64,000 nt of DNA from Macrostomum lignano (lineage: Eukaryota). Under the pieces are notes generated by a model. It was not told the origin of the DNA. It saw nothing but the letters and a program-made list of their open reading frames with translations, and did not search any database. A program made the translations under genes and the position numbers. Where the stretch lies: contig NIVC01000641.1 of NCBI GenBank assembly GCA_002269645.1, positions 62,001 to 126,000 on the forward strand. The letters run 5' to 3'. Every line of letters begins with the position of its first letter. Position 1 is the first letter of the stretch. This document shows, in pieces, positions 4,638-27,944 of this stretch.

Positions 4638-4889
4638 CCATGGTGATTTTCATATTCTCGCAGCAGAACTATCGTGTCCTGGTAAGCTACGAGCTACATG
4701 TACTATCAGCATCCAGTAAGCCAGACTGATCAATGAGATGATGAAGCCTGGGGATTGGCCCTAAGTTCTGATCTTTTCTCGTCTCCCCTCCACCACCAGG
4801 TCAGCAGCCAACGGGGGAACAGACGAGCCGACAGCCAACCAGCCGATTCGGAATTCACCACTAAATACGCAGTCACTTGCGCACAGGAC

Positions 4890-5482
4890 TCATTTTAAGG
4901 ATCCTGCGTTGGTCGGCGACTTTTTGAAGACTTCCTCGGCAACATCTATCATCAGCGTGAGTTTTTGAGCACTGCAGGATTTATATAATTTCTAGGTACA
5001 ATTCGAATTAAAATGGAAGACAGATTTGCAGATAATGTGGCTGGATATTTTAATTCAATTAACATTTCAGAGACACAATTCCGAGACACGGCATTGGACA
5101 CGACTATGGGGTAAATTTCGCAGTTTCATTTGTTTGTCGTCATAGTTACGTAGGTCAAGAAATCTTAAATCGACTTACAGTCTAAGGCACAGAGTATGTA
5201 CATTTCGTTAGGTGTGCTTGCTGAGGAGTCACATGGAGGAGCATTCTTGATTGCCTGCTCAATGGCTGCCAGAAGACACGCAGCAGCCACAGAGACCTCT
5301 GCAAACTTGGCTTGCCATCAAAAGTCTGAATACATTGTCGAAATCTTATTTTTGTTGCAGGATTCGATTCGTACTTATACTCAATCATAACGTGCCCCAT
5401 TAAGAACTAAGAATGGAGATGAAAATATAAGAATGCCTCACCAATGAGACACTCAGACTGCAATGTCTCAATCTTGAGAACC
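4890..5482 (-). CDS. Possible 3' exons of an uncharacterised gene
   Basis: Three phase-compatible segments (5482-5442, 5298-5202, 4971-4890) read VLKIETLQSECLIEVSVAAACLLAAIEQAIKNAPPCDSSASTPNEIAQKLTLMIDVAEEVFKKSPTNAGSLK*. The first acceptor is weak and no domain was recognised. Confidence 0.3.
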
Positions 5483-6213
5483 CTTCAGCAGCCGATTCTC
5501 AAAGCCGGCTGGGACGGAAACTTGATTGAAGAATCAACATCAGCAGACAATGACGCTGGCGGTGCTGCCTCTGTGTCTGTCATTGATTTTTCCAGACAAG
5601 AATAGCGCTGAAAGCTTCGGGCTCAGAGTCCGGGAATCGGAAACCCAATGGGCAGGGTGTACAGCGGCAAAATCGATCCCTATCGTGCTTTATTTATCTT
5701 CTGGAAGATGTTTGCAACCGCTGGAGTGCGGGTTTGTCTTCTAGACTGCCTGTTGGCGGTGCCGTCTGCTGCTCTCCCCCTGGCATCTGAGGAGGGCGGA
5801 AGCAAAAATTAATATGGCTGGCAGCTGCTGCCGATGCAGGGACAGATTGGCAGCTTCACTGACAGGAAAGGGCCAGGGCAGCAGCTGGATAATCTGTCGG
5901 CTAATTGAGAGATGGGGAGCTGGGATTTGGCGAGTTTAATAAGTCCAAAATAATCCCGAAAGAATCCCAAGTGAAAGTCGCTGGCAGAGTCAGAGTTCTC
6001 AATTCTTCATCAATTCTACTGAAAGGTCGAGCACCGGACACTCGTATAGAGTCTCCAAACCTGAACTCAAATATTTTTCAGTACATTTTTTCATTCCTGC
6101 CAGCCGGAACAGAAATTTCGCACTACGCGCGTATCGGTGACCATACTTTAAGTATTGAATTATTTAACACTTGTCATGACAGACTTAAGCACCGTATAAA
6201 TTATCAAGCAACC

Positions 6214-9200
6214 ATGGATTACAACGGAGAGTATTAAAAATTGTCAGAGAAGGCTCGAGTCATTCCTGAGAGAACTATTCTAGTTGAAAATGTCACCAGC
6301 TAGCCGAATGCAATTCATCGCTTTTCCTCCCCCAAAAAGTCTCCTCAACCAAATTCAGTACCGATGAGGGGCCACATATCAAGCATTTATTCAAATACTC
6401 AAAGACCTCACTTCTCCCAACTGTTTGCCTCCGCAGCGGAGAGCGAACTCAGAGGTGCTTCCACCGCACCGGCTCCGTCTCTGACACGGCCCGAGCGTTC
6501 CTTGAAAGCACCAGCATCCGCGGAGTTGGCAAGATCCTGAAGAGCCAGAGCAAGTTCCTGCGCAGACTGTGGGCCCTGTTCGTCCTGGGATCCACGTCGC
6601 TGCTGTTCTACAGCGCGTTCAAAGTCACCATCGACTACCTGCAATACGACGTGAACATTCAGACTCGCCTGGACATAGATGACGCCACCCCGTTCCCGGC
6701 GGTGAGCATCTGCAACAACCAGCCGTTCTCGGAGCGCGCCTACGAGGAGTGGTCGGCAAAGCGGATCAAGTCGCCAACGGTGTTCAACAGGGAGCTGAGG
6801 CAGCGCGGCCTCAAGCTGATGCAGGATCCCAGCATGCCGGACGTGTACGCCAAAGTGCGCAGCGGACAAGCTGATGAAAAGACGATGGCAAAATTTCACC
6901 AGCAAATGACGAACAGCATGAAGGCGCTGGTGGCCACGCTGTTCATGGACTCGTCGCGGCTGTACTATCAAAACCTATCGCCGGATGAGGCCGCGAAGCT
7001 GGGCCACGAGCGGAACAAGTCGATAGTTGACTGCATCTTCAAGTACAACTCGCAGCAGGTGCAGGGCACCAAGGGATGCTACGACAGCATGATCAAGGTT
7101 ACCAGCTTTAGCCACCCCAACTACTTCAACTGTCTGACGCTCGAATTCGACACGGAGAGGCTCACAGAGGTGCACAGCCTCACGCTGATCATGTGGCTGG
7201 GGCCGCGGGAAAACTACGACATCAGACATCGGCAGGGCTTCTTGTACGACATCTTTGAACAGGCGTATGGGCTTCGGGTGTCCATTCACGAGCCCTACAG
7301 CCACCCCAGGGTGAGCTGCAGATATAAACTCTTTGCTGAGAGGCTTTTGTTATTAGTCCACCCAATCCTCACCTACCCAATCCTCACCTACCCAATCCTC
7401 ACCTACCCAATCCTCACCTACCCAATCCTCACCTACCCAATCCTCACCTACCCAATCCTCACCTACCCAATCCTCACCTACCCAATCCTCACCTACCCAA
7501 TCCTCACCTACCCAATCCTCACCTACCCAATCCTCACCTACCCAATCCTCACCTACCCAATCCTCACCTACCCAATCCTCACCTACCCAATCCTCACCTA
7601 CCCAATCCTCACCTACCCAATCCTCACCTACCCAATCCTCACCTACCCAATCCTCACCTACCCAATCCTCACCTACCCAATCCTCACCTACCCAATCCTC
7701 ACCTACCCAATCCTCAACTACCAAATTCTCACCTACCCAATCCTCAACTACCAAATTCTCACCTACCCAATTCTTACCTACCCAATCCTCACCTACCCAA
7801 TCCTCACCTACCCAATCCTCACCTACCCAATCCTCACCTACCCAATCCTCACCTACCCAATCCTCACCTACCCAATCCTCACCTACCCAATCCTCACCTA
7901 CCCAATCCTCACCTACCCAATCCTCACCTACCCAATCCTCACCTACCCAATCCTCAACTACCAAATTCTCACCTACCCAATTCTCACCTACCCAATCCTC
8001 AACTACCAAATTCTCACCTACCCAATTCTTACCTACCCAATCCTCACCTACCCAATCCTCACCTACCCAATACTCACCTACCCAATCCTCACCTACCCAA
8101 TCCTCACCTACCCAATCCTCACCTACCCAATCCTCACCTACCCAATCCTCACCTACCCAATCCTCACCTACCCAATCCTCACCTACCCAATCCTCACCTA
8201 CCCAATCCTCACCTACCTAATCCTCACCTACCCAATCCTCACCCTCCCCACTTTTCGATATCTTCAACCATCTCAGCCTTTTCTCCTCGATCGCCAACGA
8301 ACCCCATACCGCATTCGCTATGGAGCGCGTGCGTCCCTATTTGCCACTAATTGGCCAGACAAACCTGTAAAGTCTCCGCTTCCTTTGCCGCCGAATAAAT
8401 TCTTGTCCGAAGCGCGCAAGCAGCATAAAAAGTTGAAGACAAGAAGCAACTATGCCGGCTCGCGGGAAAGCTGAGAGAGCCACTCATGAAGGCTCTCAAT
8501 CATTTTCCGGCAGCGGTGAACAGCTCGGGAAAATAAAGCCATAAAATAGCCAATGCGCCCGATAAAAAACGTATCGGCTGCTTATCCGGCTTCAACCAGG
8601 AGCCGGAGGCACTTCACCCACATGGAGTGCTGTGGCTGGCGTGACTCCATCGGCATCGCTTTTGTTCCTCACAGCCGCTGAGCTCCATCTTCTCGGGAAA
8701 TCCATGCCGGCTGAGCAGGCCAGAGACGAGAGACAGAAAGGAGTTAAGCAAGCAACTGTGAAAAAGTCCGCGGGGGTTCGAGAAAAAGGAAGCTGGAATG
8801 AATCGATGACGAAGAAAATAGGGGTGGGTGTCCATTAGCAGCCACCGGCGGGCTGGGAGGCTGCAGCAGATAACATGGCTGCAATTCAGCACGTGAGAGA
8901 CGCAGCAGGTTTCCGAGTGATTCTTCTCCCACACCTTGATTCTGTGAATCCCCCTGCAATCCTCTGCAGTTCTGCCTGCCTACATTTTCCTTTAGTCTTC
9001 CGTATACAGCCCCCCCCCTCCGCGTTGGTTCGCTCCACCCTCAACTTTTCACCTCTCCGGAGCGGCGCCGCCAATCTGGAACGGCTTCCGCAGGCATTCC
9101 GCATGGCTGCACTGATGAGCTTTGACAATAACAAATTCTAGTCCAACTTTCTCGTCTTCTGCAGCAGATTGGGGCAACAGGCTCAGAATGCTCGCCCCCA

Positions 9201-11881
9201 TTGCGACTCAGGAGAGTCGCAGCTCCTGCATTTTCTGCTATTGAGCTCAAAACGCATGAAACATTAATTAGGCAAATTGCTGCTCCTAATCCACTTTTTG
9301 CTGCTAGTTGCCCGCCGTCCATCGGAGCTCTGGGGGGGGGGCGGCTTTGACTGACAGATTCATGAGACAATCTGAACTCCGCCCCATCAGCGAGGCATTC
9401 AGAGCGGGCAAGAATAAATGGGAAAAGAAGCTCGATTTCGCTAATCAGACGGACAGAGATCCGATAAGAAAAATGAAAGTCAAAGACGGGAGCTTAAATT
9501 CTAGTCGATATTCTCAGAGCGACTCGAAATGCAGAGACATTGGCACAGCCGGATAGCGCGGTGGAGCGTGAACTCTGCCTTATTGAGTTTTGTCTCGCGT
9601 GCCTGGCCGCTTATCGAACCGCGCGCCAGAGAGCTCCGATGGCTTTGCCGGCAGACGGATTTCCCGTTGCTCAACCGGTGGTTGAGTGAAATTCCTGGCT
9701 GAGATGAATCGCGTTCACTGTTCAGCCTGTGAAGCTCGGAAACAATTGCAACAGCGATCCTGGCTGCTCACAAAACGCCACTTACTGCACTTTCACTTGA
9801 TCGCTAACTAACCAGATGGTGCTCAAGCTGGACCATCGCTAACTACCCGATGGTGCTCAAACTGAACCATCGCTAACTAACCCGATGGTGCTCAAGCTGG
9901 ACCATCACCAACCCGATGATGCTCAAGCTGAACCATCGCTAACCCGATGGTGCTCAAGCTGGACCATCACTAACCCGATGGTGCTCAAACTGAACCATCG
10001 CTAACCCGATGGTGCTCAAGCTAGACCATCACTAACCCGATGGTGCTCAACCTGGACCATCACTTACCCGATAATGCTCAAGCTGAACCTGTTAAAGCAC
10101 ATTAAGCGCCATGCTTTACAGTAATAATTCACTATTTTTAGTCAATCTCTGAGCTGAAATTGTATTTATAATGCCACCCTGGAACCCCCAGATCCTGGAA
10201 CAGGGCATCCAGACTGAGCCGGGCAAGATGAACGAGATCAATTACCAGCCAGTCCGCTTCATCCGGGCCAACACGCCAAAGAATCCGTGCGTCAGCGCTG
10301 AAGATGAGCGTCAAAGTTTTCGAAAATTTGTCGACTTTGGAAAACTGTTAGTTAAGCTTATGCTGGTCTCGTTTTTCTCCAAATTTACCAAATGTAGAGA
10401 AGGGGGTTGGCTGCGGTAGGAGAAGGGGGGTTGGCTGGGTAGGAGAAGGGGGGTTGGCTGGGGTAGGAGAAGGGGGGTTGGCTGGGGCAGGAGAAGGGGG
10501 TTGGCTGCGGTAGGAGAAGGGGGGTTGGCTGCGGTAGGAGAAGGGGGGTTGGGCTGGCTGCGGTAGGAGAAGGGGGGTTGGCTGGGGCAGGAGAAGGGGG
10601 TTGGCTGCGGTAGGAGAAGGGGGGTTGGCTGCGGTAGGAGAAGGGGGGTTGGCTGCGGTAGGAGAAGGGGGGTTGGCTGGGGTAGGAGAAGGGGGGTTGG
10701 CTGGGGTAGGAGAAGTGGGGTTGGCTGGGGTAGAAGAAGTGGTTTTGGCTGAGTCAAGGACCACTAGGAACACTTCGTTCTAGTCTAGTAGTCCTTGGAC
10801 TGGGGTAGGAGAAGTGGGGTTGAGTGGGGTAGGAGATTGGGGTAGGAGAGCTATTATTTTCTTGTAGCTGGTTCTTAGCTTCAAAACACGAACCAAGGGG
10901 TTTTACCTGTAGTTCTCCAGGCTACAGTCGCACTGACCTGCTCAGAACCGCATACTCCGCAGGTACGCCTACGACCAGGAGCTTTGTCTGAACTCCCGAG
11001 TCCAGGAGGCCTTCCTCAGCTCCTGCCGCTGCCTCTACGTGGAGATGCCTTCTGTGACGCCTCCGAACAAGACGCACCCATACTGCGCCCACCTGGACGA
11101 GAAAATCTACGAGAGGGCCGAATGCGCCAGCACTCTGGACCAGAGGAGAATCCGGCAGGCCTTCGAGGCCAGCGAGTGCCTGCCCAGATGTCAGCAGCTC
11201 AGCTACGAGAAGGAGCTGTCCGTGACCAAGTGGCGGGACACCCAGTGGATGCTGTACTGGATCAAGGAAGTCTCTGAGAAGTGGGCCTCGCACATCAACA
11301 GTCTTGAGAAGAGAAAAACACCGGAGGCGGAGTTCAGAAGCAACCTCGAGCAACTGCTGGAATACTTCAGGATGCAGAACATCACGGATCCGCAACTGCT
11401 GCGCGGCAGCGACGCCGGCACCTTCCAGTTTAACGACAGCTTCACGTACGTGGTGGTGAAGCGCCAGTCGAACAACACTCTGGTGCGCCAGGAGAAGATC
11501 GTGCTGACAATCAACGCCCTGTTCAGCCGGATCGGCGGTCTGTGCTCGATGTACATCGGACTGACTCTGGCCTTCTTTGTCGAATGCGTCGAGCTGCTCT
11601 ACCGAATGGTGTTCGACCGACGCTCCGAGTCGGCAGCGGCGGCTCGCGGCCAGACGCGAGATTCGTCGGTGGAAGCCGTGGATCTCGGACTGGACGAGCA
11701 GCAGCGAGTCCTCGACGTCACCGACGCCAGCCGTATAGGCCAGGATGAAGCTGCGGAGAAGCTGGACCTGCTAGAGGCTCGCGGTAGGCCGCGAGACCCG
11801 GCGACTGGAGCTGCCGGGTCGTCAAATGGATGCGACGACTTTGTGTGGATCCGGCAGGGCAGGAATCCGAGTGGCCTGTGA
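6214..11881 (+). CDS. DEG/ENaC (ASIC/pickpocket-like) amiloride-sensitive channel family subunit, about 654 aa, 4 exons
   Basis: Exons 6214-6230, 6437-7310, 10192-10346 and 10963-11881 have compatible phases. Pre-TM1 FLESTSIRG, TM1, post-TM1 FPAVSICN, SHPNYFNCLT, cysteine-rich thumb (YAYDQELC..Q...SSCRC) and TM2 LFSRIGGLCSMYIGLT..VECVEL. AATAAA near 11915. The short first exon and the exon 3 donor are less certain. Confidence 0.9.
7360..8245. repeat. 15-bp intronic minisatellite (CACCTACCCAATCCT)n
   Basis: About 58 copies starting about 50 nt after the donor at 7311. It produces the ILTYP repeat in ORF 6651-8474. Confidence 0.97.
9800..10090. repeat. 31-35-bp intronic tandem array with an internal inverted repeat
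   Basis: About 9 units of CCGATGGTGCTCAAGCTGGACCATCGCTAAC, with stem CGATGGT/ACCATCG. Confidence 0.9.
10395..10850. repeat. G-rich intronic minisatellite of about 24 bp (GGTAGGAGAAGGGGGGTTGGCTGC)
   Basis: Tandem copies begin about 50 nt after the donor at 10347. Confidence 0.93.
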
Positions 11882-13114
11882 CGAACTGGGACTCAGCTTT
11901 ATATTTATTGAAAAAATAAAACTGCGACTTAACTCGAACATTGATGATTGCGTATAGCTGCGAAATCATCAAGGACAACTAATAATTACACTTTTTAAAT
12001 AGAATTTAACACTTTGTTTTCGGTAAATCAGCGCTGAGTAGACAAGTTTTGTTGTTGTTGAATTCGAATTCGCGCCAAAACCACAGAACTGTTCTGTGGC
12101 CAAAACAGATATTGCTAAGCAACGCTAATATACCAAATGAATAATTATTCTGCCCATTCCGCTGACTTCTCAGAACACACAAGCGTGAATCACACGACAA
12201 CCCCCCTGGGCCAATTTTCCTGCACACGAGCCCCGAATGAATATGACAGCGCACGGAATCGAACCAGGGGTCGTCGTATGGCGCGAGAGTCAGTTGAGTT
12301 TACAGCGGAGCAGCTTAAATTTAAAATACATTTAGCTGAGAAATCTCATCTTAGAAAGTCGATTAATTGTTAGGCGTTTGATGGTATTTGAATGATGTTT
12401 AAAAGCTCGTAAACAGTTACGCTCTTTTGGCGCGAATTTGAAATTCGATGCGTACCGTGTGTAGTTTTTGCGCTTTTATTGACATTTTTGCCTACTTGAG
12501 AGTTCTGCTGTGCAATGAGAAGCTTAAAAGTAAAGATTGGTAATCTTTGGTAATTTTTTATCTCTTTCGAGTAATTGCAGCTTTTTGGCACAAGCATTAA
12601 TACTGCACATGCATCGAAATCAGAGACTAAGAAATTTAAGAATGGCTTGCCCGCAGAATTCTTCAAGACGCTTCATTCTTCAGTCGAAATTGTTACACTG
12701 TATTCTAACCATTGCAGAATTTCAACTGCGGGATGAATTTGCAAATGATCCTCAGTTCCGATACAATTTTTTTATTCATGAAATCTTAAAGCAATGAGAT
12801 TTGGAATTCTGCCCGCACAGAAGTCTGAATTTCCATATTTAGTTAGCCTGAATACGTGCTTCAGTTATCAGCTCCCCGTATGACGTAGATCTGAGCAGTC
12901 AGAAGGAGAACTGCATCTGTTGCTACTTTTTAAGCTGTAAAAATACACCACCGGATTAACAACGAAACACCAAGTGCATTTAGCAGCTGATACGAGTGTA
13001 ACCTGGGCATGCTTTGGCTAAGCTGATCTCGTATCGCTGAATTGATCATGAGTAACTGAGTCAGGCATTGGTCAGGAGGTTGTCGGTCAGAGGATCGATC
13101 TGTCAGGGGATTTG

Positions 13115-14185
13115 CTTGGTCAGGAGTCAGGGATTGATCGGTCAGGAGTCAGGGATTGATCGGTCAGGAGTCAGGGATTGATCCGTCAGGAGTCAGGGAT
13201 TGATCCGTCAGGAGTCAGGGATTGATCGGTCGGGAGTCAGAGATGGATCGGTCAGGAGTCAGAGATGGATCGGTCAGGAGTCAGGGATTGATCGGTCAGG
13301 AGTCAGGGATTGATCGGTCAGGAGTCAGAGATTGATCGGTCAGGAGTCAGGGATTGATCGGTCAGGAGTCAGGGATGGATCGGTCAGGAGTCAGGGATTG
13401 ATCGGTCAGGAGTCAGGGATTGATCGGTCAGGAGTCAGGGATTGATCCGTCAGGAGTCAGGGATGGATCGGTCAGGAGTCAGGGATGGATCGGTCAGGAG
13501 TCAGGGATGGATCGGTCAGGAGTCAGGGATGGATCGGTCAGGAGTCAGAGATTGATCGGTCAGGAGTCAGGGATTGATCGGTCAGGAGTCAGGGATTGAT
13601 CGGTCAGGAGTCAGGGATTGATCCGTCAGGAGTCAGGGATGGATCGGTCAGGAGTCAGGGATGGATCGGTCAGGAGTCAGGGATGGATCGGTCAGGAGTC
13701 AGAGATTGATCGGTCAGGAGTCAGGGATGGATCGGTCAGGAGTCAGAGATGGATCGGTCAGGAGTCAGGGATTCGATTGATCGGTCAGGAGTCAGGGATT
13801 GATCGGTCAGGAGTCAGGGATTGATCGGTCAGGAGTCAGAGATTGATCGGTCAGGAGTCAGGGATTGATCGGTCAGGAGTCAGGGATTGATCGGTCAGGA
13901 GTCAGGGATGGATCGGTCAGGAGTCAGGGATTGATCGGTCAGGAGTCAGGGATTGATCCGTCAGGAGTCAGGGATGGATCGGTCAGGAGTCAGGGATGGA
14001 TCGGTCAGGAGTCAGGGATGGATCGGTCAGGAGTCAGGGATGGATCGGTCAGGAGTCAGAGATTGATCGGTCAGGAGTCAGGGATGGATCGGTCAGGAGT
14101 CAGGGATGGATCGGTCAGGAGTTAGGGATTGATCGGTCAGGAGTCAGGGATGGATCGGTCGGGAGTCTGGGATGGATCGGTCAGC
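13115..14185. repeat. 22-bp minisatellite (GTCAGGAGTCAGGGATTGATCG)n, about 48 copies
   Basis: Direct reading. The unit contains a GTCAGG sub-duplication. Confidence 0.96.
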
Positions 14186-14743: not shown

Positions 14744-15217
14744 TCATTGCTGATCCGGGTCAAACTTCATGGCGAACTCGAAGTCCCGATAGGTGACTCG
14801 GCCGTCAGCGTCGGCGTCCACCTCGGCGAAGGCGCGGTCAACGGCGAAGCCGCCGGCAGCCAATCGCGGCGCAAGGAGACCGACAGCGCGGCGCAGGTCC
14901 TCGGCCCGGAGGAAATTCCGGCCGCCGGAGTCCAGCGCGGCAAAGGCGTGCCGGAGCTGACCATCAGCGTCCAGACGCGACATCCGAGCTGAAGCCAGTC
15001 GCCGGAAGGTGTCGAGAGTCACGAACTCATCAGTGGGGCCAGCAACTGCGGGCTGCGACTGCATGATGAGGTCGAGCTCCCGGCGGCAGGGCTTGTAGCC
15101 AAAGAGCTCGATCCAGGCGACCTTCACGTCACCACGGCAAAGCCGGCCATCCGAGTCGGCATCAGCATTCGCAAAGGCGTCATCAATGCGGAGCTGCCGG
15201 GTGGCCTCGCTTACCAT
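14744..15217 (-). CDS. EFCAB11: EF-hand calcium-binding domain-containing protein 11 (intronless CDS, about 157-160 aa)
   Basis: EF-hand loops DADSDGRLCRGD, DSGGRNFLRAED and DADADGRVTYRDFE, plus the family-typical LFGYKP motif. The start may be ATG 15226 or 15217. Confidence 0.85.
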   Translation of the reverse strand: MVSEATRQLRIDDAFANADADSDGRLCRGDVKVAWIELFGYKPCRRELDLIMQSQPAVAGPTDEFVTLDTFRRLASARMSRLDADGQLRHAFAALDSGGRNFLRAEDLRRAVGLLAPRLAAGGFAVDRAFAEVDADADGRVTYRDFEFAMKFDPDQQ

Positions 15218-18200
15218 GGAGTGCATCAGTGCGCTGCGGGTGGCAGAGATTATTAGCTTTATGATAGGGCTAGGGTAGGGTTAGATAGGGTCTTGGGTAG
15301 AGTTATACATAATTGAGAGAACAATCTGATTAAAGCTGTAACTGTATAGAACTATGCTTTATTTTAAACTATAGCTAAATCAAACATTTTGATTCGCAAA
15401 AAAGTTTGATAAATTGAATACAAATTCAACTGAATATTTAAATAATATTGACAATTAAATTGCATCTTTTTTATTAATATGTTTTACTCACTGATATAAT
15501 TAACTGTTCTGTACTAAAAATACAGTGAAAAAACTATGTTAAATGAACAAAACATGTCACATTTAAATTTAAATAAGATATTTAAATAAAAACCTGTAAG
15601 TAAGCTTATATAGAAATTATAGAAATATAGAAACTAATTGATGGTAAAATTGATTAGAATATCTATTTAAATAACCATATTAGCTTAAAATCTAATGCAA
15701 AAGCAAGAGTTTTTGGTTAACAATTAAATGATGTAGTAAAGTAGGCACTAATATGGTGCAATAACAACAAATTGAAGAGGGCTAAGCATATTGTTGTATA
15801 TAATATAATATTTTATTGTTTTCTGTTAAATAGGCCAACATAAAATTAAGCTGTCTTCGTCCGTCAGACAGTAATCATACAGATTTACAGTCATCTGTAT
15901 GGCGATAGGCCTAGCATTTATTAATAGTTTAACAATTTTTAAGTTTAGTAGATTGTAACAGAAAGTAATAATGTTTTCGAAAAAGAAAGCATTTCATTGT
16001 AACTTTAAAGATGCTTGTAACAGCTCCAATTGTCATATTGGGTAAAAGTTTGAGCAGCAAAACAATTCTACTTTAAAGAGCATAGCTAAGCCTAAAACAC
16101 TTATTATGCAGATATGCAGTTCTTTTAAAAAGACCATGTTAGAAACGGAGGTGAAGCTTTGATGAAAATACATGTTATAACAAATGCACACAGGTGAAAA
16201 TTAGGAAAAAGTGTATTTTCTGACGTTCGGGGACTCTATTTTGTCTAAATATTTTTTCTGAGCTAACAACCAAGCAGAGAGAGATAAAAACTTTAATTTT
16301 GAACTAATCTGTGTGTATAAATTAGCACTTCGATTGTTGCCTTTAAGCGCAGTCCCAAGTCACAAGTGGGTCTAAAATTTGGTGCACCAGAGAACGTAAA
16401 CAGTTCGAGCACAGGCTTCATAGAGGCTAATTAGACTAACATCATGCGCTTAGCGGGAAAGCAAAACAAAAAACTAAAATGTACAAAATGGAAAAGTCTT
16501 AAAACGCTAACGAGACATATATATGTGCTGTATGTATTGTACAATCAACCGAAATCAAGAGAACTCGGGTAGTTATAACTGGATTAATTTTTGCTATTGG
16601 CGCGTGATTTTTTTAGCGTAAAAAGGGATGAGCTTAGCAAAATGCGATAAAGGCGGAAAACTACATGAATAGTAATTCAGATCCGTTTAAAAAACAGGAC
16701 AGACTGGCTCGTATTTGCCTTGTCAATACAGTTCTTTATGTACCCAACGTAAAGAATTGTGCCCATGATTTTTTGAAGAAAGTCACACAGAGCATTTGCT
16801 ACCGTGAGTTCTTTAAAGCCCAAAAACCTACACGGAAGCTATACTAATATATTGTTTTGATTGCAATATCAAAATCCGTATCCGACAACATTTACATTTA
16901 ACCGTTTTTCTGTATGGATTGTCTCATTGAAGATGCATTCGTTCAACTTGGATGCACATTAGCTGCTTGAAAGTCATTTGTTAATACTTCTTCGAATTTG
17001 GATAGCTTACAAAAAACAAGTATAAGAATTTGGAATCTAGTAGGTGTGTGGCGTATTATGCAAAGAAAATGTTATAAGCAGAAGTTCCCCAAAGAATAGA
17101 TTTTCTAGGGGCAAGCATGTAGCATTGTGAACTGCGCTGTTACAGTGTGCTGTCAACACTACTGTCTAACTTAATTATCACCAGCGGCTTTGACTTTAAG
17201 CTGTTTGTTCGCGCCACGGAAACGACAGTTTTGAGAGCCCTGAATGCGGGCAAAACAAGCAGCCTGCCATAGCACTGTGTGACATAGCTATACGACAAAT
17301 GCAAATAACAAGTCTTTGAAAGACTTCTGCTTGTTGCAAACGACTTATTTCTGAAATTGAATTACTCTCGTGTGGACTATCGGAACTAACTTAAAATCCG
17401 GATGCTTTAGTTCTGTGCAGAGGCGTTCATTCAGAGTGAGAAATGCGAATTCCAAGTCAGTTCGCTGAATGGAAAAGAGATATACATTTGCATGTTAAGC
17501 ATAGGGAAGACTTGCTGCAGGCTTGCATGTCGCAACTCACTGCTGCCACAGCATACCCTCCTATAGATTTATTGAAGTTCGTTTTTTACTATGCAAGAGA
17601 CTTAACTCGAATTAGCTAGCGAAAAAATTTGTGAACTTCAAAAAGAGTTGAAATTATTGAAGTGCTGTCTAATACAAAACAGTTTTATAAAATTGCTGAA
17701 CATTTTGTTAATCCTTTAAGCTTTTATGCAGACAACGGAGGACAGCAACTTTAATGTTGGCACTATATTGGTAATAGCTCAGCTTCCAAACAAATAATTG
17801 GTCTATTGACATGCTGAAAAGTATTATTGGAGAGCAGCAAACAGTCCCAGAATGCAGCTGTGACCTATAAATGCAGCTCGAAGCGGAGAAATATCTAGTT
17901 AATATAGAATGCCAAGGCAGCCCTCGCAACTGAAGCCGCTCAGCGGGCACCTACTTTTGTCCCATAGACATCAGCAGCTGCCATAGTCTATGGGCCAAAA
18001 GGACATTTGATACATTTGTACGCCTGGTACATCTGCTTGCATTTTAAAGCTGAATCAGGGAAGCCTCTATCGTCACTGCGCTTTGACCATAGAGGCTTCC
18101 TTGGCTGAATTCAAAGCAAATACCGACTCAGTAGGCTTCTTAAATGTTCCTAATTTTGTCTTAAAATAAAGTCAACACAAACTGCAGGGAATTCTTGATG

Positions 18201-18679: not shown

Positions 18680-21600
18680 TCAATTCACAAAGCAGGCCGT
18701 CAGGGCCATCGCAGCGGCGGCCCACAGAAGCTGTCGCAGCGGCCCGGCGGCCAGCCAGCTCGAGTCCGACTTTGACCTCCCGATGAGTTGACAGCGCTCA
18801 GCCTGCGGAGACTCCGAGCAGAGAGTGTGCACGAGAAACCTGCGGAGTGGGCGAGATGTCTGTCTGATGCGGGGAACAGACCGAAACAGAACAGAGTTAA
18901 ATGAAAAAGACAGAATACTTATACTCTGCACTAGCACAATAACGCTCACAGCGGATTGTCCTGACAGTTGACCCGTACGCCCTTCAACAGCAGCCGCTGC
19001 CGCAGTCGCAGCACTGACGGATCCATCCGACATGCGCTGTAAGCAGACGCCAGACGCGGATCGTTGAGCGAGCGCAGCGGGTAGACATCGACCTGGCTGA
19101 TCCGCGGCGGGCTGAGCTGGGGCAGCTCGAACTGGCCGAAGATCCTCAATGGATTTTCAGGGCGAAAAAAATTATAGGCATTGTAATTTTTTGATTGTCA
19201 GTCTCACCCACCCGTCTAATTATAAACCCCAGCCTCCCCACCTGTCTAATTATAAACCCCAGCCTCCCCACCTGTCTAATTATAAACCCCAGCCTCCCCA
19301 CCTGTCTAATTATAAACCCCAGCCTCCCCACCTGTCTATTTATAAACCCCAGCCTCCCCACCTGTCTAATTATAAACCCCAGCCTCCCCACCTGTCTAAT
19401 TATAAACCCCAGCCTCCCCACCTGTCTAATTATAAACTCCAGCCTCCCCACCTGTCTAATTATAAACCCCAGTCTCCCCCACCTGTCTAATTATAAACCC
19501 CAGTCTCCCCCACCTGTTCAATTATAAACCGCAGTCTCCCCCACCTGTCTAATTATAAACCCCAATCTTCCCACCCACCTGTCCAATTATAAACCCCAGT
19601 CTCCTCCATCTGTGCAATTATAAACCTCAAGTCTCTGACATGCCTAATGGTGAGACGAAGACTAATTTGACAAGAACTTCGGTGGAGGTGGATAACTCAC
19701 GAGGTCTCTCGGAAGGGATTCGCCACAGATGCGTTCAGTAAGACGGACACTTTTCCTGTAGATTTGCCTGCAAACTTATTGATTGTCAAGGCAGAAGATT
19801 TTTGTTTATTCAGTATTGTTCAAATGTCATAAGAATTAACTGTGCTCTCCAAACCAGGATACTGTGAGCATAAAGTGAAGATAAATCGATTATTCATTCT
19901 CTTCTTAGCGCACTCAAATAAAGATGGGCATTTTCAAATATTTCAAGTGCGATAAGAAATTCTTCACGTTCTGGATAAGTGAGGTGTTTGACATTAGCAC
20001 TTATTGCCATGATAATCCTTTGCAAAAGATAACATCTCGAATTTAATAAGATTTTCTGGAATTCTCAGAGCCCCAGCTCGTCAAACCTCACCGACCCGCG
20101 TCTCTCTGTTTGCCTTGTCTGCAGAATCGAAATTAGAATCAACGGCGATGCTAACTATCACGCCTAAAATTACAAATGCAGTGAAAAATAATTGCAGCTT
20201 AGGGCGGCGAGTCCAGGGATTTGCTCCAGTCCCGGTGCTGCAGTTTTTTTAGCTGCTCAAAATTGCTGAAGAAGCACCTGGCAGATGACTGAAGACGATT
20301 TGCCGAAAGGATCTCCGTGTTATAAGTTACAGACACTGCCACACCAATCGGTACTCAGCAATGCACTCAGCAGAGACACTGCCACATCATTCGCTACTCA
20401 ATCATGCACCCAGCAGAGACACTGCCACACCAATCGGTACTCAGCAATGCACTCAGCAGAGACACTGCCACACCAATCGGTACTCAGCAATGCACCCAGC
20501 AGAGACACTGCCACATCATTCGCTACTCAGCAATGCACTCAGCAGAGACACTGCCACACCAATCGGTACTCAGCAATGCACCCAGCAGAGACACTGCCAC
20601 ACCAATCGGTACTCAGCAATGCACTCAGCAGACACTGCCACACCAATCGGTACTCAGTCGTGCACTCAGCAGACACTGCCACACCAATCGGTACTCAGTC
20701 GTGCACTCAGCAGACACTGCCACACCAATCGGTACTCAGCAATGCACCCAGCAGAGACACTGCGACACCAATCGGTACTCAGCAATGCACCCAGCAGAGA
20801 CACTGCCACACCAATCGGTACTCAGCAATGCACCCAGCAGAGACACTGCCACACCAATCGGTACTCAGCAATGCACTCAGCAGAGACACTGCCACACCAA
20901 TCGGTACTCAATCATGCACCCAGCAGAGACACTGCCACACCAATCGGTACTCAGCAATGCACTCAGCAGAGACGCTGCCACACCAATCGGTACTCAGCAA
21001 TGCACTCAGCAGAGACACTGCCACACCAATCGGTACTCAGCAATGCACCCAGCAGAGACACTGCCACACCAATCGGTACTCAGCAATGCACCCAGCAGAG
21101 ACACTGCCACACCAATCGGTACTCAGCAATGCACTCAGCAGAGACACTGCCACACCAATCGGTACTCAATCATGCACCCAGCAGAGACACTGCCACACCA
21201 ATCGGTACTCAGCAATGCACTCAGCAGAGACGCTGCCACACCAATCGGTACTCAGCAATGCACTCAGCAGAGACACTGCCACACCAATCGGTACTCAGCA
21301 ATGCACTCAGCAGAGACACTGCCACACCAATCGGTACTCAGCAATGCACTCAGCAGAGACACTGCCACACCAATCGGTACTCAGCAATGCACTCAGCAGA
21401 GACACTGCCACACCAATCGGTACTCAGTCGTGCACTTAGCAGAGACGCTGTCTGCACTAAAATTATGCATAGCAACAAACTCTGTTGCTCACCCAACTGG
21501 AAGCGGCAATCCAGAAAGGCAAGGTAAAGTTGGTGCAGCTCTCCCGACGCGTCACCTGACTGTTGGTTGATCGCCTTCTTCTCAGAGAAATTTTACTACC

Positions 21601-24600
21601 TCTGGTGTTGACGTCGCAGCGGTAGTTGCACCAGTCCATGGAGTTCATGATGAACCCTGCGGGTCGCATCGTTCAATGAAACATCAATTATTTTTACTTT
21701 AAGCGCGTTGCGATATTCACTGATTTCAGCCCTCAATCCCGAACGCCATTTCAGGAAAGCGCCGTTTCTTTTAAGGGTGGAAGGGGCTCGAACCCCAACG
21801 GCCTTGGGTTGTTTTCCTGGTAAAACAAGCTGAAGGCTTGTGTCACAAAAATAACGGCTAGGTGAGCAGCTCAACTCACCGATCAGAGTCTCCTCCAATG
21901 GGAAATACTCGGGCATATCGCGCACCCTGATAACCAGGCTGTAGGCGGTGCCTGACCAGAACACAAACTGCAAATTGTGTGTTGAGAAGCATTGCGGAGC
22001 GGTGTCTGAATAAATTTCATTGTTACATTGTGCGACATGTGCGTTGCTCTCTCAGGCTCATCAGGTTAAACCTGATAAAGATCAGTTTCCGTTTTACTGC
22101 CAGCAGATCTACCTTGCAGCAACTGACTAACAATTAGTTACTATGGGGATCAGAGGTGCGAACCCATGAAAGCCAGCTCGCAGTAGTGAACCCTCTCGAT
22201 CCAGCTAGTAGAGTCACCTTTGAAGGAATTGCTCTAACACCACTCATCACTCGCCAGTACAGCACATGCAGCACGTACTTCCTGGATCTAGCTCGTACTT
22301 CTAAAAACATTCAGAAAATAAATTACTTATCATATCTGCTATTGCACTTCTGTTATAAACTGGCATCACCTATAATATTAATAATAATTGATTACACCTG
22401 CGTTAATTGGCTGATGTGCAACCGACAGCTCAGCCGCAGCTATTGCGTACGGCTGCAAGGATTGAGGGGTCGCCACGCACACCCTCAATTAACCCAGCTA
22501 ATGGTAGTACCCATTTTACAGCTGGGTGAACTGAATCAATGCAGAGTTAAGTGTCTTGCTCAAGGACACAAATTGTTCCAGTGGGATCGGGAAAGAACCC
22601 CCGACCTTTCAGTCGTGAGTCCTTCGCTTTAACCACTAGGCTACAACCCCCTATGCTGGCCATGCGATTTCGAAGTTGACATGGTGCACGAAAACAGTCA
22701 TATTAGTCACACCTTGTCAACTGGAATTTCGTGATTGGCCATTTGCAGCAGCCCCGCAAAATCATCAGGCTCCGGCCGACAGTGGTCCGGTTGCAGGGCG
22801 ACGAAGCGAAACTCTTCCCACAGCCGGGAGCAGTTCTTTCGGCTGGATCTGCAAAGTGCGGGTTTCCAATAGCTAAATATTTGCTAGAATAGCAAGGCTA
22901 CATTGTGCACTTAAAGATTAATATACCTGCTATTTTCCTGTCTCAAGAGAGATTGAAGACTTGGGAATCCTTATTGACTCAAGCAGAGCCCGTGCATAGC
23001 TCTCTAGTCGAACGTAAAATTATCTTTTACAAGCAAACGCCTTCGGGCTTCATAGATAACCAGTCAGGCTCAAGGCCGCGGACTTAGAGGCCATGAAAAA
23101 CATACATGAAATACATACATACATCGTTCCATCGAGTGGCCTTTTGCCTGGCGGTCCAATACCTAGCTGTGCCATTGTTCAAAATGTCTATGGTAATTTA
23201 AGTTTAGGCAATGGCATTCAAGCAATGACCGGTCATTGTTTAAAATTGACAGTATAGCAATTTACCGGAATATCATTTTAGAAAACAAACAAGTCTAAGA
23301 GCGTAAAATGAAATAGTCTATGGTTGTAAGTGGGGGCTTCGCCCCACACCTTCATTTCCCCTCCCCATTCCTATCCTGGATGGACAAATTGACAAATGAA
23401 GTTAGCTGAAAGTGATAAAACACAATTCTGACTTCCAGACAACCCCCATTATCAACCCCGCAAATTGAGTGATAGAGAAAGCGCGAATTAGTTGATACAA
23501 CGAGCTGTCTATGGCCCGAACTCTAAGTGCATACCCGGAAATTCCTTGCTACGACCGAAGGGAGTTGATAGTGAGGTCCGAGGAACAATTTTGATGACGA
23601 ATTTCGATAAAGTTTCGTCCCTTGATTTGTGCCAGGTGTCAAAATGCGTAGAAAAGATGGAATTTTACAATGAAATAACAAAAACGGAAATTCGATACCT
23701 CTTTTGTATTCGAAGAATGCCAGAAATTTTTAAAACGGCCCTTTTCGGAGAAAATGTAACCCGCAAAAATAAGCAACTGCTTTAAAAAATTTGCGCATGG
23801 CCAATAAGTAGAGTCCCGGAAGGAACGAAAATCGGCTCCACTTTAGACTCCTCTATTGGCATTCTATGCATACTCGATATTCTCTGCTTACAACACTTAT
23901 TAAATCAGTAACGAATCCGATTATTGCACTTCTAAGTAACTGTCACCCATAGACAAGACTTGAATTTTCCCCCATAGTATCTGCTGAGTCGTGCGACTAA
24001 TTTCCCCCACTGATATGTAGAACACTCGGCAATATTGGCGCCGGACTACTCAACCAGCATTTTTACGATCATTCCCTCAAAAATTCGGTAAATGAGTTTA
24101 GGCGAAATGCGACGAACGTGTTCCCAACTCTTGTCTGGAGCTGATGGGGTCTGATATTTGCATTATTAAATTGCATTTTCCTTTGTTTCGGGAGGCGGAC
24201 ACAGAAGCGATTCTTAATAAAATAGTGCAAATCCACCATCGAATTGCTTTGTTTAAGTCAACAAAGTTGAGCATGAGATTCAGCCAAAAATAGTTAACTA
24301 TTAACTTCATTTAGGATGTTTATAGTAAGTTTTTATCTCCCAATAATTCGTGTTTAACCATTTTTTGGGCTCCAGTCAGCAACTCAATTCACTCAGCTCC
24401 AGAAATTTGCTAATGGCACCAATCAAACTGGACAATGAAGTTAATGGAGTAAATGAAACTTTTCCTGACAGTGCAAACAACAGAATATTGCTGTTTAATT
24501 ACCGTTTATTAACACACGCTATAAAATCCTTTCGCTCAGATGGTTCCCTCATCATGTGTCGCAATCAGTCAGACTTAGTCCGTCATGATTCCTCCCAGTT

Positions 24601-27600
24601 GCCTCATCGTCTTCTTCGCTGCTCTGCTCGCTGCTTCAACCACTGAAGCTGCCGATGTAGCCTCGCCAGACGCTGCCGTGATGGCGGCGCTGAAGCTTGG
24701 CACCGACTACAACAGGGCGGTCCGGCCGCCCCCGGACAATGGCACCGCAAACACTGTGACCTTGGTCATCTTTCTGTTCAGCCTCGTCAATGTGGTGAGT
24801 TGATATTTTCCGAAGCTCTAGGAGACATTGATTTAATTATTACTAGTCCTTGTCGATTTCACAGGACTCTGCGTCTCAGGAAGTGACACTGCAGTTTTCT
24901 CTTTCGAAGGTCAGTACTTGCTTGTATTGATTAGGGGGGAGAGATGCTTTGTCTAACTGGATTTCATTACGAAAAGAACCTGCTATAAAGAAGCTTTTCG
25001 AAACCTTGCCGCAGCAATGGCTCGACGCTCGCCTATCATGGATGACGAAGTCTAATTCGTCATTGGGCAGAGTGCAGAAAATATCCGTTCCCTCAAAAAT
25101 GGTCTGGATACCGGATGTTTCTGTTGACAATGTGTAAGTTGAGGCCCCGTTTTCTGAATCTCGCGGCAATTTAATAATGATGTTTCCGTATCTATTACAG
25201 GTTGGGGATAAAGGATATTTCACTGGATGAGCCACCTGTTTCAGTTTTTAACTATGGCTTGGTTCGACACGAGAAAGTGCTGCTTGTCACGTTTAAGTGT
25301 CAGATGGAGATGCAATATTTTCCGTTTGACAGTCAGAAATGCGGCTTTAGCATCAGGTCTAAAAATTCACCTGACCAAACAAAGCTGAAGATATATTTCG
25401 ACAGAGACTTTCCTCCGGAAAAATACTTGTCAAGGAACAACGAATTCTGCATCAAGAGAGTATTTTTAGAGGAGCATCGATTGGATGTAGTTGATGCAGT
25501 TATTCTTGTGCTTAAATTTCAGGTAAGAAATCATTATGTTCGCTAAACTTTCTAAGGATGATTTCGTAGCTCAGCGGTAAAATGTGTCTGACTCTCGCAA
25601 CAACACGGGTTCGATTCCGTGATTCTCACACCTGTGATAATCAATATCAAAGGCGCAGAGAATGTACCTGTCTCAAATCTGACGATTAGCAAGTCAGCTG
25701 GCCGCTGTACAGCCTGTGTGAGCGTGCTGTATGAGTGCGTCACTGTGCACAGTATTGGTGCGTGCTTGCATGTGCTCAGGAGTCAGCGGAGATGTCACTG
25801 AAGGCGTTGCGCCAGGGTGTCCACAGCATCCTGCGATTATTATTATTGACTTACGGGACTTCAGGCTTCTTTCAACCTATAGAGCCTATCTATAACTCAT
25901 ATGAAATACACATTTTAGCCCACTCATTAGAGCCGAAAGTAGGATCGTGGACCTGATGATTCAATCATTAAATGCAAACGTAGATTAGTTTATACACATT
26001 TACCATTTGATTTTAGCTCTAGGGACTGTGCAAGTTGCTAAACTTCGCGCGGAACTGATCATTTCGCGCGTTCAAAAAGCCTCGGTAGTCTTTTGAATGG
26101 ACCAATTTGAACACATCGACCTGAAAATATTTGATTGCATTGCTTCTTTTAAGAGACGGTCGGCGTTCTACGTGACGAACCTGCTCTTTCCGAGCATCCT
26201 CCTGCTCGCCATCTCTGCATTCGCATTCCGAATGCCTCCAGACTGCGGTGAGCGAGTCTCCTTCAGCATCACAATCGTGCTGTCGATGTGCGTGTTCCTG
26301 CAGCTGGCTGGCAACTACACGCCCACGCAGAGCGAGTCCGTACCACTCATCAGTGAGTCGCGAGATATTCGTTCTGCTGACCAAATCTCTGTACGTACAT
26401 GTACGCTCATGTGGTCACAATTTCCATTGCAGCTTGGTACTTCAGCATCGCAGCAGTGATGACAATTCTGAACGCGCTTTGCAACATATTCGTGCTGAGG
26501 TGTCACTCCAAGCAGCACAACAGCGCTCACGTCAGCAACCGGCTGATCCGTGCTCTATTCCTTAACCGACTCGTGACTGGGAGGAAACCACAGGTGCATG
26601 CTGCTCAAGATACAGCTGACCAGACTGAGGTCTCTGATGGAGACATCCCGCCAAGTCCCCTGCAAGACAATGAGTGGAGCATTGTTGTAGCGTCAGCCGA
26701 CAAAGTGTTCTTTGCGATGAACGTCTTCGTCACTGTGATTACAGCCATACTCACGACTGTATTTGCAATCAGTGCATATTCGGACAATTGCATTGAAGGA
26801 ACCTACTCTTCGGTGGTTGATTTGGTCAAAGATGAATAATTTCTCCTTGTTTATGCTATCATTAACCACGATAGAAATATTTTGCCATCGCTAGCAAAGG
26901 TGGTCTGGTCACAATTTTGGATGATGAATTTCGATAAAGAACTGCTCTAAAATTTTACGTCTGGTCCCTTAATTTGTGCCAGGTGTCAAAATGCGTAGAA
27001 AAGACGGAATTTTACAATGAAATATCAAAAACGGAAATTCGATACCTCTTTTGTATTCGAAAAATCTCAAAAAAACATCCAAAACGGCCCTTTTTCAGTG
27101 AAAATGTAACCCGCAAAAATAAGCAACTGCTGTATGTAGCAAACAATCTAATTAACTTAGATGATTAAAATCACAGGGAAATTATAGAATGATATTTGGA
27201 TTTTTGTTTAAATGCGTCAATTTTTATCTGCCCGTAATACCCAATTGAAGTACTAATTATGTACGAAATTTGGTTTTTTGCAGATAGCTCGAAAACTTTG
27301 CATACAAACGTATTGCGAAAATACTCCCATGCACTAAATCTATCAATTATCTACAAAATGGCACCTTATGTATCCACGGATTGAATGAAAACTGAGGGAG
27401 CAGGATGAGGGCGTGGGGGGCGGAGACAAAACAGTTTTTTTGGGGGCGGAGTTTTTCTTTGGGGGCGGAGTTTTTCTTTGGGGGCGGAGCCTTTAAAACT
27501 CAAACTTAAAGGAGACAAAGTTTTATTCTATGGCAAGATATACCGAGCATAGAAACAATTTAGTGCGCTTTCGATGTTTTTCTGTCTAATTTGAGGAAAT

Positions 27601-27944
27601 GTTCAGACTCCTGAATGCCGTTTTTTTATAGACTGGCTTTTACAAAAACTGACAGATCAACAACAGTAAGCCGCGATTAACTGATTGCGGACTGCGTTTG
27701 GCATTAACTACTGTCCCTATGAAATGATGCCCCCCGCGTCTCCCTGACAACTACTGCATTGACCGCCCGGCACTCACATCTGAGGGAATAGTTCCGGGTG
27801 TCGCAGCAGCTGGAATTCATTGCACCGTCCGACAAAGATGGCCATGAGCGATGCTTCATCAGGCAGCTGGGCCTGCTGAATGGGTAGGAAGTGAAGCACA
27901 ACCAGCAGCAGCAGTGGCAGCAAAACAGACTCCCTTGCTATCAT
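18680..27944 (-). CDS. ADP-ribosyl cyclase / NAD(P)+ glycohydrolase (CD38/CD157/SmNACE family), signal peptide and probable GPI anchor, about 327 aa, 7 exons
   Basis: Exons 27944-27778, 22848-22713, 21967-21880, 21656-21493, 19774-19701, 19144-18950 and 18839-18680 are all phase-compatible. Motifs: FVGRC..FQ, NCSRLWEEF, FWSG, PLEETLIGF (TLEDTL signature), DWC, FWIAAS, VLLNAS, FGQFEL (catalytic Glu), ten family-position cysteines and a hydrophobic C-terminal tail. Confidence 0.9.
19205..19640. repeat. 30-bp intronic minisatellite (CCCACCTGTCTAATTATAAACCCCAGCCTC)n
   Basis: About 14 copies filling most of intron 5 of the cyclase gene. Confidence 0.95.
20330..21450. repeat. 43-bp intronic minisatellite, about 26 copies
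   Basis: Unit CAGAGACACTGCCACACCAATCGGTACTCAGCAATGCACTCAG in cyclase intron 4. It explains three ORFs of about 385 aa. Confidence 0.96.
22445..22651 (-). mobile_element. tRNA-derived SINE
   Basis: The minus strand shows A-box TAGCCTAGTGG, a degenerate B-box GGTTCTTTCC, then GTGTCCTTGAGCAAGACACTTAAC...CACCCAGCTGTAAAATGGG, a body typical of metazoan SINE2 elements. Confidence 0.8.
23585..23781 (+). repeat. Dispersed repeat of about 200 bp, copy 1 (copy 2 at 26911-27131)
   Basis: Shared text GAATTTCGATAAAG...TTTGTGCCAGGTGTCAAAATGCGTAGAAAAG...GAAAATGTAACCCGCAAAAATAAGCAACTGCT. Confidence 0.9.
24585..26839 (+). CDS. Divergent nicotinic acetylcholine receptor-like Cys-loop channel subunit (cation-type TM2), about 433 aa, 6 exons
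   Basis: Exons 24585-24794, 24865-24909, 25015-25133, 25201-25522, 26154-26352 and 26433-26839. Signal peptide, YNRAVRP, QWLDARLSW, WIPDV, Cys-loop CQMEMQYFPFDSQKC, RRSAFY-TM1, PPDCGERVSFSIT-TM2, TM3 and TM4. Confidence 0.93.
25560..25810 (+). mobile_element. tRNA-derived SINE in intron 4 of the Cys-loop gene
   Basis: A-box TAGCTCAGCGG (25567-25577), B-box GGTTCGATTCC (25608-25618), then the GGCCGCTGTACA..GTGAGCGTG body shared with other copies. Confidence 0.75.
26911..27131 (+). repeat. Dispersed repeat of about 200 bp, copy 2
   Basis: Same orientation as 23585-23781, with an insertion of about 24 nt. Starts 72 nt after the Cys-loop stop codon. Confidence 0.9.

Follow-up and report, generated by a model that had tools for sequence, protein, structure and literature searches.

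A seven-exon gene of the ADP-ribosyl cyclase/CD38/CD157 family in the free-living flatworm Macrostomum lignano and its predicted cell-surface product

The ADP-ribosyl cyclase family makes calcium messengers, and some of its members are held on the outside of the cell by glycosylphosphatidylinositol (GPI): the schistosome NACE is a tegumental, GPI-anchored glycohydrolase of nicotinamide adenine dinucleotide (NAD), and CD157 is likewise GPI-anchored on the cell surface. SmNACE hydrolyzes NAD without making cyclic ADP-ribose (cADPR), and the nicotinamide feeds NAD salvage (PMC7252647). In the Aplysia cyclase, the nicotinamide site is formed by the triad Glu98-Asn107-Trp140, and the structurally documented switch between cyclase and hydrolase is the position occupied by Phe174 in this enzyme and by Thr221 in CD38 (PMC2785692). 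Here we analyze a gene of this family, BOX15_Mlig028261g2, in 64,000 nucleotides of DNA from Macrostomum lignano (contig NIVC01000641.1, positions 62,001 to 126,000; this whole stretch is called the window, and positions are those of the window unless another contig is named). Judging from its sequence, BOX15_Mlig028261g2 very probably is a seven-exon gene for a secretory-pathway member of the ADP-ribosyl cyclase/CD38/CD157 family that cleaves NAD at the cell surface.

Gene model and family membership

The gene lies on the minus strand (27944..18680), from the start ATG at 27944..27942 to the stop TGA at 18682..18680; when its seven exons are joined at the splice sites given below and the result is translated, a coding sequence (CDS) of 984 nt gives a product of 327 residues. 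All of the introns are GT-AG, and all of the exon phases are compatible. The product is identical to GenBank PAA79305.1 (UniProt A0A267FZN5), the protein deposited for BOX15_Mlig028261g2 of M. lignano, and the span of that gene in NIVC01000641.1 (9265 bp) is equal to 18680..27944; the segment 8680..37944 of the window is 100% identical to this contig (assembly GCA_002269645.1, Mlig_3_7) over 29,265 bp. The initial annotation, made from the letters of the window, had described a seven-exon gene of the CD38 family with these limits and had discussed it as a free-living homologue; every exon is where it was placed, the introns are GT-AG, the CDS is that of PAA79305.1, and the gene does belong to a free-living flatworm. 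The gene had also been called hidden. This holds for the track of open reading frames (ORFs), whose cut-off of 60 residues excludes exons 1 and 2, as had been noted (the ORF of exon 1 has 56 residues, and exon 2 lies in a stop-to-stop frame of 58 codons without a start), but not for the public annotation, which contains the identical, RNA-seq-guided model.

The product matches Pfam family PF02267 (Rib_hydrolayse) with 165.9 bits (E-value 1.4e-48) in one stretch that covers positions 3–241 of the 241 in the profile; because the curated cut-off is 25 bits and the full profile is matched, this is far beyond chance, and the family assignment of the initial annotation is borne out by HMMER. Among proteins of known structure in the PDB, the sequence matches are to the Aplysia cyclase (E-value 2e-27), BST-1/CD157 (3e-23), and porcine, mouse, bovine, and human CD38 (~1e-15 to 1e-18). 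The AlphaFold2 model, built with 52 homologues, has a mean predicted local distance difference test (pLDDT) of 87.1 and a predicted template modeling score (pTM) of 0.79, with residues 141–170 as its sole poorly defined part. When this predicted structure was compared with solved structures by Foldseek, all of the 50 matches listed were chains of Aplysia cyclase or CD38, two proteins with a two-domain alpha/beta fold (probability 1.00; target-normalized template modeling score 0.73–0.85); the Aplysia cyclase is at the top with 0.82–0.85, and CD38 follows with 0.74–0.82.

The human CD38 sequence in our alignment was checked before use, and its key residues (W125, E146, D155, W189, S193, and E226) and all twelve ectodomain cysteines fall at their published numbers. 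In the MAFFT alignment, CD38 W125, E146, D147, W189, and S193 correspond to W105, E126, E127, W179, and S183 of the M. lignano protein; D155 (Aplysia N107) corresponds to N135, T221 (Aplysia F174) to I211, and E226 (Aplysia E179) to E216, and the same mapping is obtained when HMMER aligns the protein with the Aplysia chains. Both programs align the segment IFGQFELP, which contains E216, to FFGKYELP, and the E216 column is invariant in the 52 homologues; among 153 aligned family sequences, Trp is found in 138 at the W105 column and in 148 at the W179 column, Glu in 104 at E126, and Ser in 142 at S183. The equivalents of CD38 W125, E146, W189, S193, and E226 are thus all kept, as had been claimed, and the predicted active site is complete: the catalytic Glu216, the nicotinamide-site triad E126-N135-W179 as in Aplysia, W105, and S183.

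At residues 124–129 (21901..21884), the protein has PLEETL rather than TLEDTL, that is, the changes T144P and D147E. The initial annotation had drawn attention to this substitution as lying at the motif that tunes cyclase versus hydrolase activity; the motif is present, but the tuning Glu (CD38 E146) is itself retained as E126, and the documented switch is the F174/T221 position, which is Ile211 in M. lignano. Glu at the 147 column occurs in 10/153 of the aligned family sequences, so this residue, although infrequent, is also found elsewhere in the family.

Proteins of the family have ten conserved cysteines, paired in five disulfides. The M. lignano domain contains ten cysteines (41, 62, 79, 140, 144, 171, 248, 270, 282, and 291), and an eleventh, C324, is in the tail. 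All ten family cysteines had been said to be kept; the number is right, but only nine of the ten family columns are in register in the MAFFT alignment, and the column of Aplysia C125/CD38 C173 has no Cys. C144 (in WCNYRC), four residues past C140, may be a displaced stand-in for the missing one. Between C144 and C171 (residues 145–170) the protein has a lineage-specific, Arg/Ser-rich basic insertion of ~10–12 residues. This loop contains RRRR (residues 156–159; 21582..21571, minus strand) followed by Ser160, which fits the furin-type pattern RX[KR]R and is kept in a second genomic copy of the gene (see below). More speculatively, furin-type processing at this site could give a two-chain, disulfide-held enzyme; we know of no such cleaved form described for the ADP-ribosyl cyclase family.

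The seven exons, all on the minus strand, divide these features as follows. Exon 1 (27944..27778, residues 1–56), the sequence of which is unchanged in the second genomic copy, encodes a signal peptide-like segment (residues 1–25, with the hydrophobic core at 6–22) and the first family cysteine, C41 (in GRC), and ends in the phase-2 donor AT/gtgagt; exon 2 (22848..22713, residues 56–101) has the acceptor tttgcag/A and the phase-0 donor AAG/gtgtga and carries C62, C79, and the sequon at N61. Exon 3 (21967..21880, residues 102–131) encodes FWSG, with W105, and PLEETL, with E126 and E127; N135, C140, C144, the RRRR loop, C171, W179, and S183 all lie in exon 4 (21656..21493, residues 131–185), the donor of which is TGG/gtgagc (phase 0). 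The short exon 5 (19774..19701, residues 186–210, FAGKSTGKVSVLLNASVANPFRETS), with the sequon at N199, is bounded by the acceptor aataag/T and the phase-2 donor TC/gtgagt. Exon 6 (19144..18950, residues 210–275) begins after the acceptor ttgag/G and encodes I211, F212, the catalytic E216 (19128..19126), C248, and C270; exon 7 (18839..18680, residues 275–327 and the TGA) encodes C282, C291, SKSDSS (residues 297–302), and the hydrophobic tail LLWAAAAMALTACFV (residues 312–326), which is followed by one residue.

We scanned every frame of the minus strand between 18000 and 28600 for coding blocks, with tblastn of an Aplysia cyclase sequence serving only as a lead, and found cyclase-like blocks at ~27.9, 22.8, 21.9, 21.6, 19.1, and 18.8 kb. 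Splice-site reading alone gave exons 1–4, 6, and 7; exon 5 came from the public model PAA79305.1. A draft exon 5 at 20165..20086 (VIVSIAVDSNFDSADKANRETRV), reached from a weak donor (GTTT/gttgct) after exon 4, aligned without gaps to CD38 but had a one-base phase conflict with exon 6; it was ruled out because the public exon at 19774..19701 fits all of the phases and gives a Pfam score of 165.9 bits, compared with 126.7 bits for the draft. For exon 7, the acceptor catcag/A, which is 21 nt upstream, in frame, and would add QTSRPLR, was rejected as the main form, because GenBank uses ccgcag/G and the last-cysteine spacing fits the shorter form. No further cyclase copy was found when the whole 64-kb window was searched by tblastn with the product.

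A search of a protein collection with the draft product matched five M. lignano proteins. The other public models of the locus conflict: A0A1I8JAG9 (P0002) skips exon 5, P0005 is frame-shifted in exon 6, and A0A1I8JS25 (P0004) adds an antisense exon. In GenBank the product is named 'hypothetical protein'; UniProt models of the same locus bear the family name, and Pfam matches are precomputed for the exact protein. Our literature search (locus tags; Macrostomum together with ADP-ribosyl cyclase) found no paper in the searched library on this gene or on the two subjects in combination. The gene model and its family are already public and the function is uncharacterized; the finding is correct and ordinary, that is, it concerns a real gene for which the same model is already in GenBank, and its value as a discovery is limited because both the exact protein and a near-identical copy (PAA59199.1) are public.

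Predicted activity and membrane attachment

Hydropathy analysis places hydrophobic segments at the two termini only (residues 5–23 and 311–327). An n-region of five residues (MIARE) precedes the first hydrophobic core; SKSDSS, a possible omega site, lies ~10 residues upstream of the tail, and a single residue follows the tail. Most of the invertebrate homologues in the alignment have a similar hydrophobic tail at the C-terminus. This layout, which agrees with the signal peptide and GPI-type tail put forward in the initial annotation, would fit a signal peptide combined with a GPI signal, the arrangement of CD157 and of the schistosome NACE. The protein has three N-glycosylation sequons (N61, N173, and N199), and N199 is the family-conserved LN(G/A)S site.

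We propose that the N-terminal hydrophobic segment would be cleaved as a signal peptide on entry into the endoplasmic reticulum, where the domain would be glycosylated and disulfide-bonded, and that the C-terminal hydrophobic tail would be exchanged for a GPI anchor, so placing the enzyme on the outer cell surface like CD157 and the schistosome NACE. There it would cut the nicotinamide-ribose bond of extracellular NAD(P)+ via an intermediate stabilized by Glu216, with ADP-ribose and nicotinamide as the products; some cyclic product probably would be formed too, because Trp105, which is replaced in the schistosome NACE, is kept and the residue at the switch position, Ile211, is hydrophobic. The physiological role could be salvage of environmental or released NAD, or signaling by cADPR or NAADP (nicotinic acid adenine dinucleotide phosphate); because the animal is free-living, scavenging of host NAD at a parasite surface cannot be the role of the M. 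lignano enzyme.

An exhaustive HMMER scan of 1.84 billion cluster representatives yielded 299 family members at E ≤ 0.001, with a maximum identity of ~33% outside of Macrostomum's own cluster. The top match from elsewhere (P0006; 33% identity, motif SLEETL) is encoded by a 1096-nt contig, ERR6338309_280662, from an Arctic eukaryote-fraction metatranscriptome; the best named matches are frog, scallop, hemichordate, apple snail, and nemertean proteins. The cyclases of molluscs, hemichordates, nemerteans, and amphioxus score E-values of 1e-22 to 1e-27, and the cluster of S. japonicum NACE (P0136) scores 2.7e-11. A profile search with the 52-sequence alignment against an index of 5.8 billion proteins gave at least six proteins, with no new named relatives among the matches listed. 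In a neighbor-joining tree of 138 sequences, M. lignano and P0006 form a pair that adjoins a five-sequence trematode clade (Schistosoma, Heterobilharzia, Clonorchis, Opisthorchis, and Calicophoron; bootstrap 99%); trematodes plus Macrostomum have a bootstrap of 11–13% as an exact clade, or 41% when the criterion is loosened. The initial annotation had named SmNACE as the closest relative known to it; by score this does not stand, the S. japonicum enzyme being weaker than the mollusc and deuterostome cyclases, and the link in the tree is weak. On this sequence comparison, a common flatworm origin of the M. lignano and trematode enzymes is plausible.

The tree position next to the clade that includes S. 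japonicum NACE is what one would expect if the protein, like the schistosome NACE, were purely an NAD glycohydrolase, that is, an enzyme with essentially no cyclase activity that would serve NAD scavenging (nicotinamide salvage) and not calcium-messenger synthesis. SmNACE itself makes no cADPR and feeds nicotinamide salvage (PMC7252647), and the switch position is non-aromatic in M. lignano (Ile211 vs Phe174 in Aplysia). We consider this possible but rather unlikely, because the exact clade has the low bootstrap given above, Trp105 is kept, in contrast to the His of S. japonicum and the Tyr of Heterobilharzia, and Asn135 is of the Aplysia N107 type and not the Asp of CD38 and S. japonicum.

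The W125 column separates the flatworms in the comparison: His in S. japonicum NACE and Tyr in Heterobilharzia, but Trp in Clonorchis, Opisthorchis, Calicophoron, and M. lignano, so that replacement of the Trp is limited to schistosomatids among the flukes compared. Kuhn et al., writing in 2006, reportedly gave the His at this first active-site Trp position as the reason for the poor cyclase activity of SmNACE. We tentatively suggest, while thinking it doubtful, that the ancestral enzyme of flatworms was GPI-anchored on the cell surface and still able to cyclize NAD, that the M. lignano enzyme may have stayed in this state, and that the change from Trp to His or Tyr arose only within the Schistosomatidae; on this reading the cyclase-disabling change would be confined to blood flukes, because the Trp is found in liver flukes, rumen flukes, and Macrostomum alike.

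The enzyme might also be real but lack the GPI anchor, either as a soluble protein that is secreted or stored in granules, like the Aplysia ovotestis enzyme, or as a type I membrane protein anchored by its tail. The soluble Aplysia cyclase is indeed the best match in both sequence and fold, and the tail has only 15 hydrophobic residues, which AlphaFold2 models within a helix (residues 308–326). However, the one residue after the tail leaves no cytoplasmic stop-transfer segment, the small residues of SKSDSS ~10 positions upstream give the usual layout of a GPI signal, and equivalent tails are found in mollusc, nemertean, amphioxus, and fluke homologues, whereas the Aplysia enzyme has none; we regard a protein without the anchor as improbable.

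Several points weigh against the proposal of a GPI-anchored surface enzyme that cleaves NAD and also forms some cyclic product. The signal peptide and the GPI attachment are predicted from hydropathy and simple rules. To our knowledge, an Ile in the F174/T221 position is uncharacterized, and the cyclase-to-hydrolase ratio is not readable from sequence. Because the canonical Cys is displaced to C144, one disulfide may depart from the family pattern, and the basic insertion, modeled with low pLDDT, adjoins the active-site cleft.

Transcript support, a second copy, and the surroundings of the gene

The annotation of NIVC01 derives from RNA-seq that was assembled with StringTie/TACO into a genome-guided transcriptome (PMC5730564); because of this origin, the deposited seven-exon CDS reflects an assembled transcript, and the source of the annotation indicates that the gene is expressed. 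The acceptor of exon 6 is ttgag/G, with a rare G at −3, as the initial annotation had read it. Because no AG other than this one occurs between the upstream in-frame stop and exon 6, and because the canonical CAG that follows 18 nt downstream does not fit the phase-2 donor of exon 5, the GAG is the sole acceptor that is compatible with exon 5.

A second genomic copy of the gene, BOX15_Mlig004070g1, which encodes PAA59199.1, is located in NIVC01002287.1 (7520–23980, our segment L002, in which the gene is at 3001..13461). Such a copy is to be expected, because the M. lignano assembly carries 180 Mb of duplicated blocks (PMC5730564), and it agrees with what is known of block duplication in this assembly of the DV1 line. 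The two proteins are identical in 326/327 residues, the sole change being E169D in the disordered loop; the CDSs differ at 6/984 positions (five synonymous changes and E169D), and all of the splice sites, including ttgag/G and aataag/T, are common to both. In the introns, compared outside of the minisatellites and a nested channel gene, 125/4246 aligned positions differ (2.9%), with 95 indel columns in addition. The CDS and intron divergences differ (Fisher p = 2e-6), and the ratio of nonsynonymous to synonymous changes per site (pN/pS) is ~0.07 (binomial p = 0.004); the gene is under coding constraint. Against the Pfam profile, the exon-5-skipped A0A1I8JAG9 scores 105.5 bits in two stretches, in comparison with the 165.9 bits of the model with exon 5 and the 126.7 bits of the draft with the wrong exon.

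The conflicting public models (P0002, P0004, and P0005) and the weak GAG acceptor, with a canonical CAG 18 nt downstream, might suggest that the gene is a decaying or non-functional copy, either a pseudogene or a gene for which exon 5 is absent from the main transcript (as in A0A1I8JAG9), so that the protein is inactive. This is very improbable: both genomic copies have retained the complete reading frame, the residues of catalysis, and all of the splice sites, with pN/pS ~0.07; the downstream CAG does not fit the phase of exon 5; the model with exon 5 gains 60 bits against the family profile; and RNA-seq guided the annotation from which the GenBank model was taken.

The introns contain further features. 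Intron 4 holds a minisatellite with a 43-nt unit repeated 26 times (20331..21450), and intron 5 holds one with a 30-nt unit repeated 14 times (19199..19626); because of these arrays, long spurious ORFs occur on both strands. The 30-nt array has grown to ~1.9 kb in NIVC01002287.1, and this expansion accounts for most of the longer span of the second copy (10,461 vs 9,265 bp).

Intron 1 (4929 bp) contains a complete-looking gene for a Cys-loop cation channel at 24585..26839 on the plus strand, that is, antisense to the cyclase. Its coding blocks have the approximate limits 24585–24794, 24955–25134, 25229–25531, 26136–26375, and 26399–26839 (all plus strand), and they encode a signal peptide, the Cys-loop CQMEMQYFPFDSQKC, and M1–M4; Pfam assigns the Neur_chan ligand-binding and membrane domains, and the best PDB matches are 5-HT3A (E-value 3.7e-29) and nicotinic subunits. 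None of the genes that GCA_002269645.1 annotates at this locus is the channel. Between the two genomic copies, mismatches amount to 1.1% in the channel and 2.9% in the surrounding intron (p = 6e-5). In the 401-residue model A0A1I8JS25 (P0004), an insert of 112 residues between cyclase exons 1 and 2 maps to 26037..26372 (minus strand); because this is the reverse strand of the transmembrane exon of the channel, the insert is most likely a strand or annotation artifact. A direct repeat of ~170 nt flanks the channel (23612..23784 and 26959..27134, plus strand; 90–92% identical); the 64-kb window contains no third copy of the repeat, and the second genomic copy of the locus has the pair as well.

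A single-exon EF-hand gene (14744..15229, minus strand; 161 residues; Pfam EF-hand_7, E-value 9e-13) lies 3.4 kb downstream of, and on the same strand as, the cyclase gene. The occurrence of a calcium-binding protein beside a member of a calcium-messenger enzyme family may be a coincidence.

Comparison with known systems

M. lignano is a laboratory flatworm that is amenable to transgenesis and RNA interference, so it could serve as a harmless model of the role that a surface NADase/cyclase has in a flatworm that is not a parasite. It may also help to date the loss of the cyclase-associated Trp from the schistosome enzyme.

The Aplysia californica cyclase (PDB 1LBE, 1R12, and 3ZWM) is the best solved-structure match, both by sequence (end-to-end) and by fold. 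The triad E126/N135/W179 corresponds to E98/N107/W140 and E216 to E179, the Trp of FWSG is shared, and nine of the ten cysteines are in register. The two proteins are, however, only ~26–27% identical; the M. lignano protein has Ile211 in place of the cyclization-directing Phe174, a basic insertion of 10–12 residues after the WC motif with the partner Cys displaced to C144, and a hydrophobic, GPI-type C-terminal tail that the soluble Aplysia enzyme does not have.

CD157/BST-1 and CD38 share the Pfam family, the fold, and all of the equivalents of W125, E146, W189, S193, and E226 with the M. lignano protein. CD157 also resembles it at both ends, with a signal peptide at the N-terminus and a C-terminus of the GPI type, both predicted for M. 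lignano. Unlike CD38, a type II protein with a cytoplasmic N-terminal tail and a signal-anchor, the M. lignano protein has only five residues ahead of its hydrophobic core and is not type II; it lacks the CD38-specific C119-C201 disulfide (Val and Gly occupy these columns), and it has Asn for D155, Glu for D147, and Ile for T221.

The schistosome NACE (SmNACE/SjNACE) belongs to the same family and comes from the same phylum; it has the architecture of a signal peptide and a hydrophobic tail that is predicted for M. lignano, and it is a neighbor of the M. lignano protein in the neighbor-joining tree. It differs in that the pairwise score (E-value 2.7e-11) and the bootstrap are weak, and the two active-site positions compared above set the proteins apart: Trp105 of M. 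lignano is His in S. japonicum, and N135 matches N107 of Aplysia, whereas S. japonicum and CD38 have Asp.

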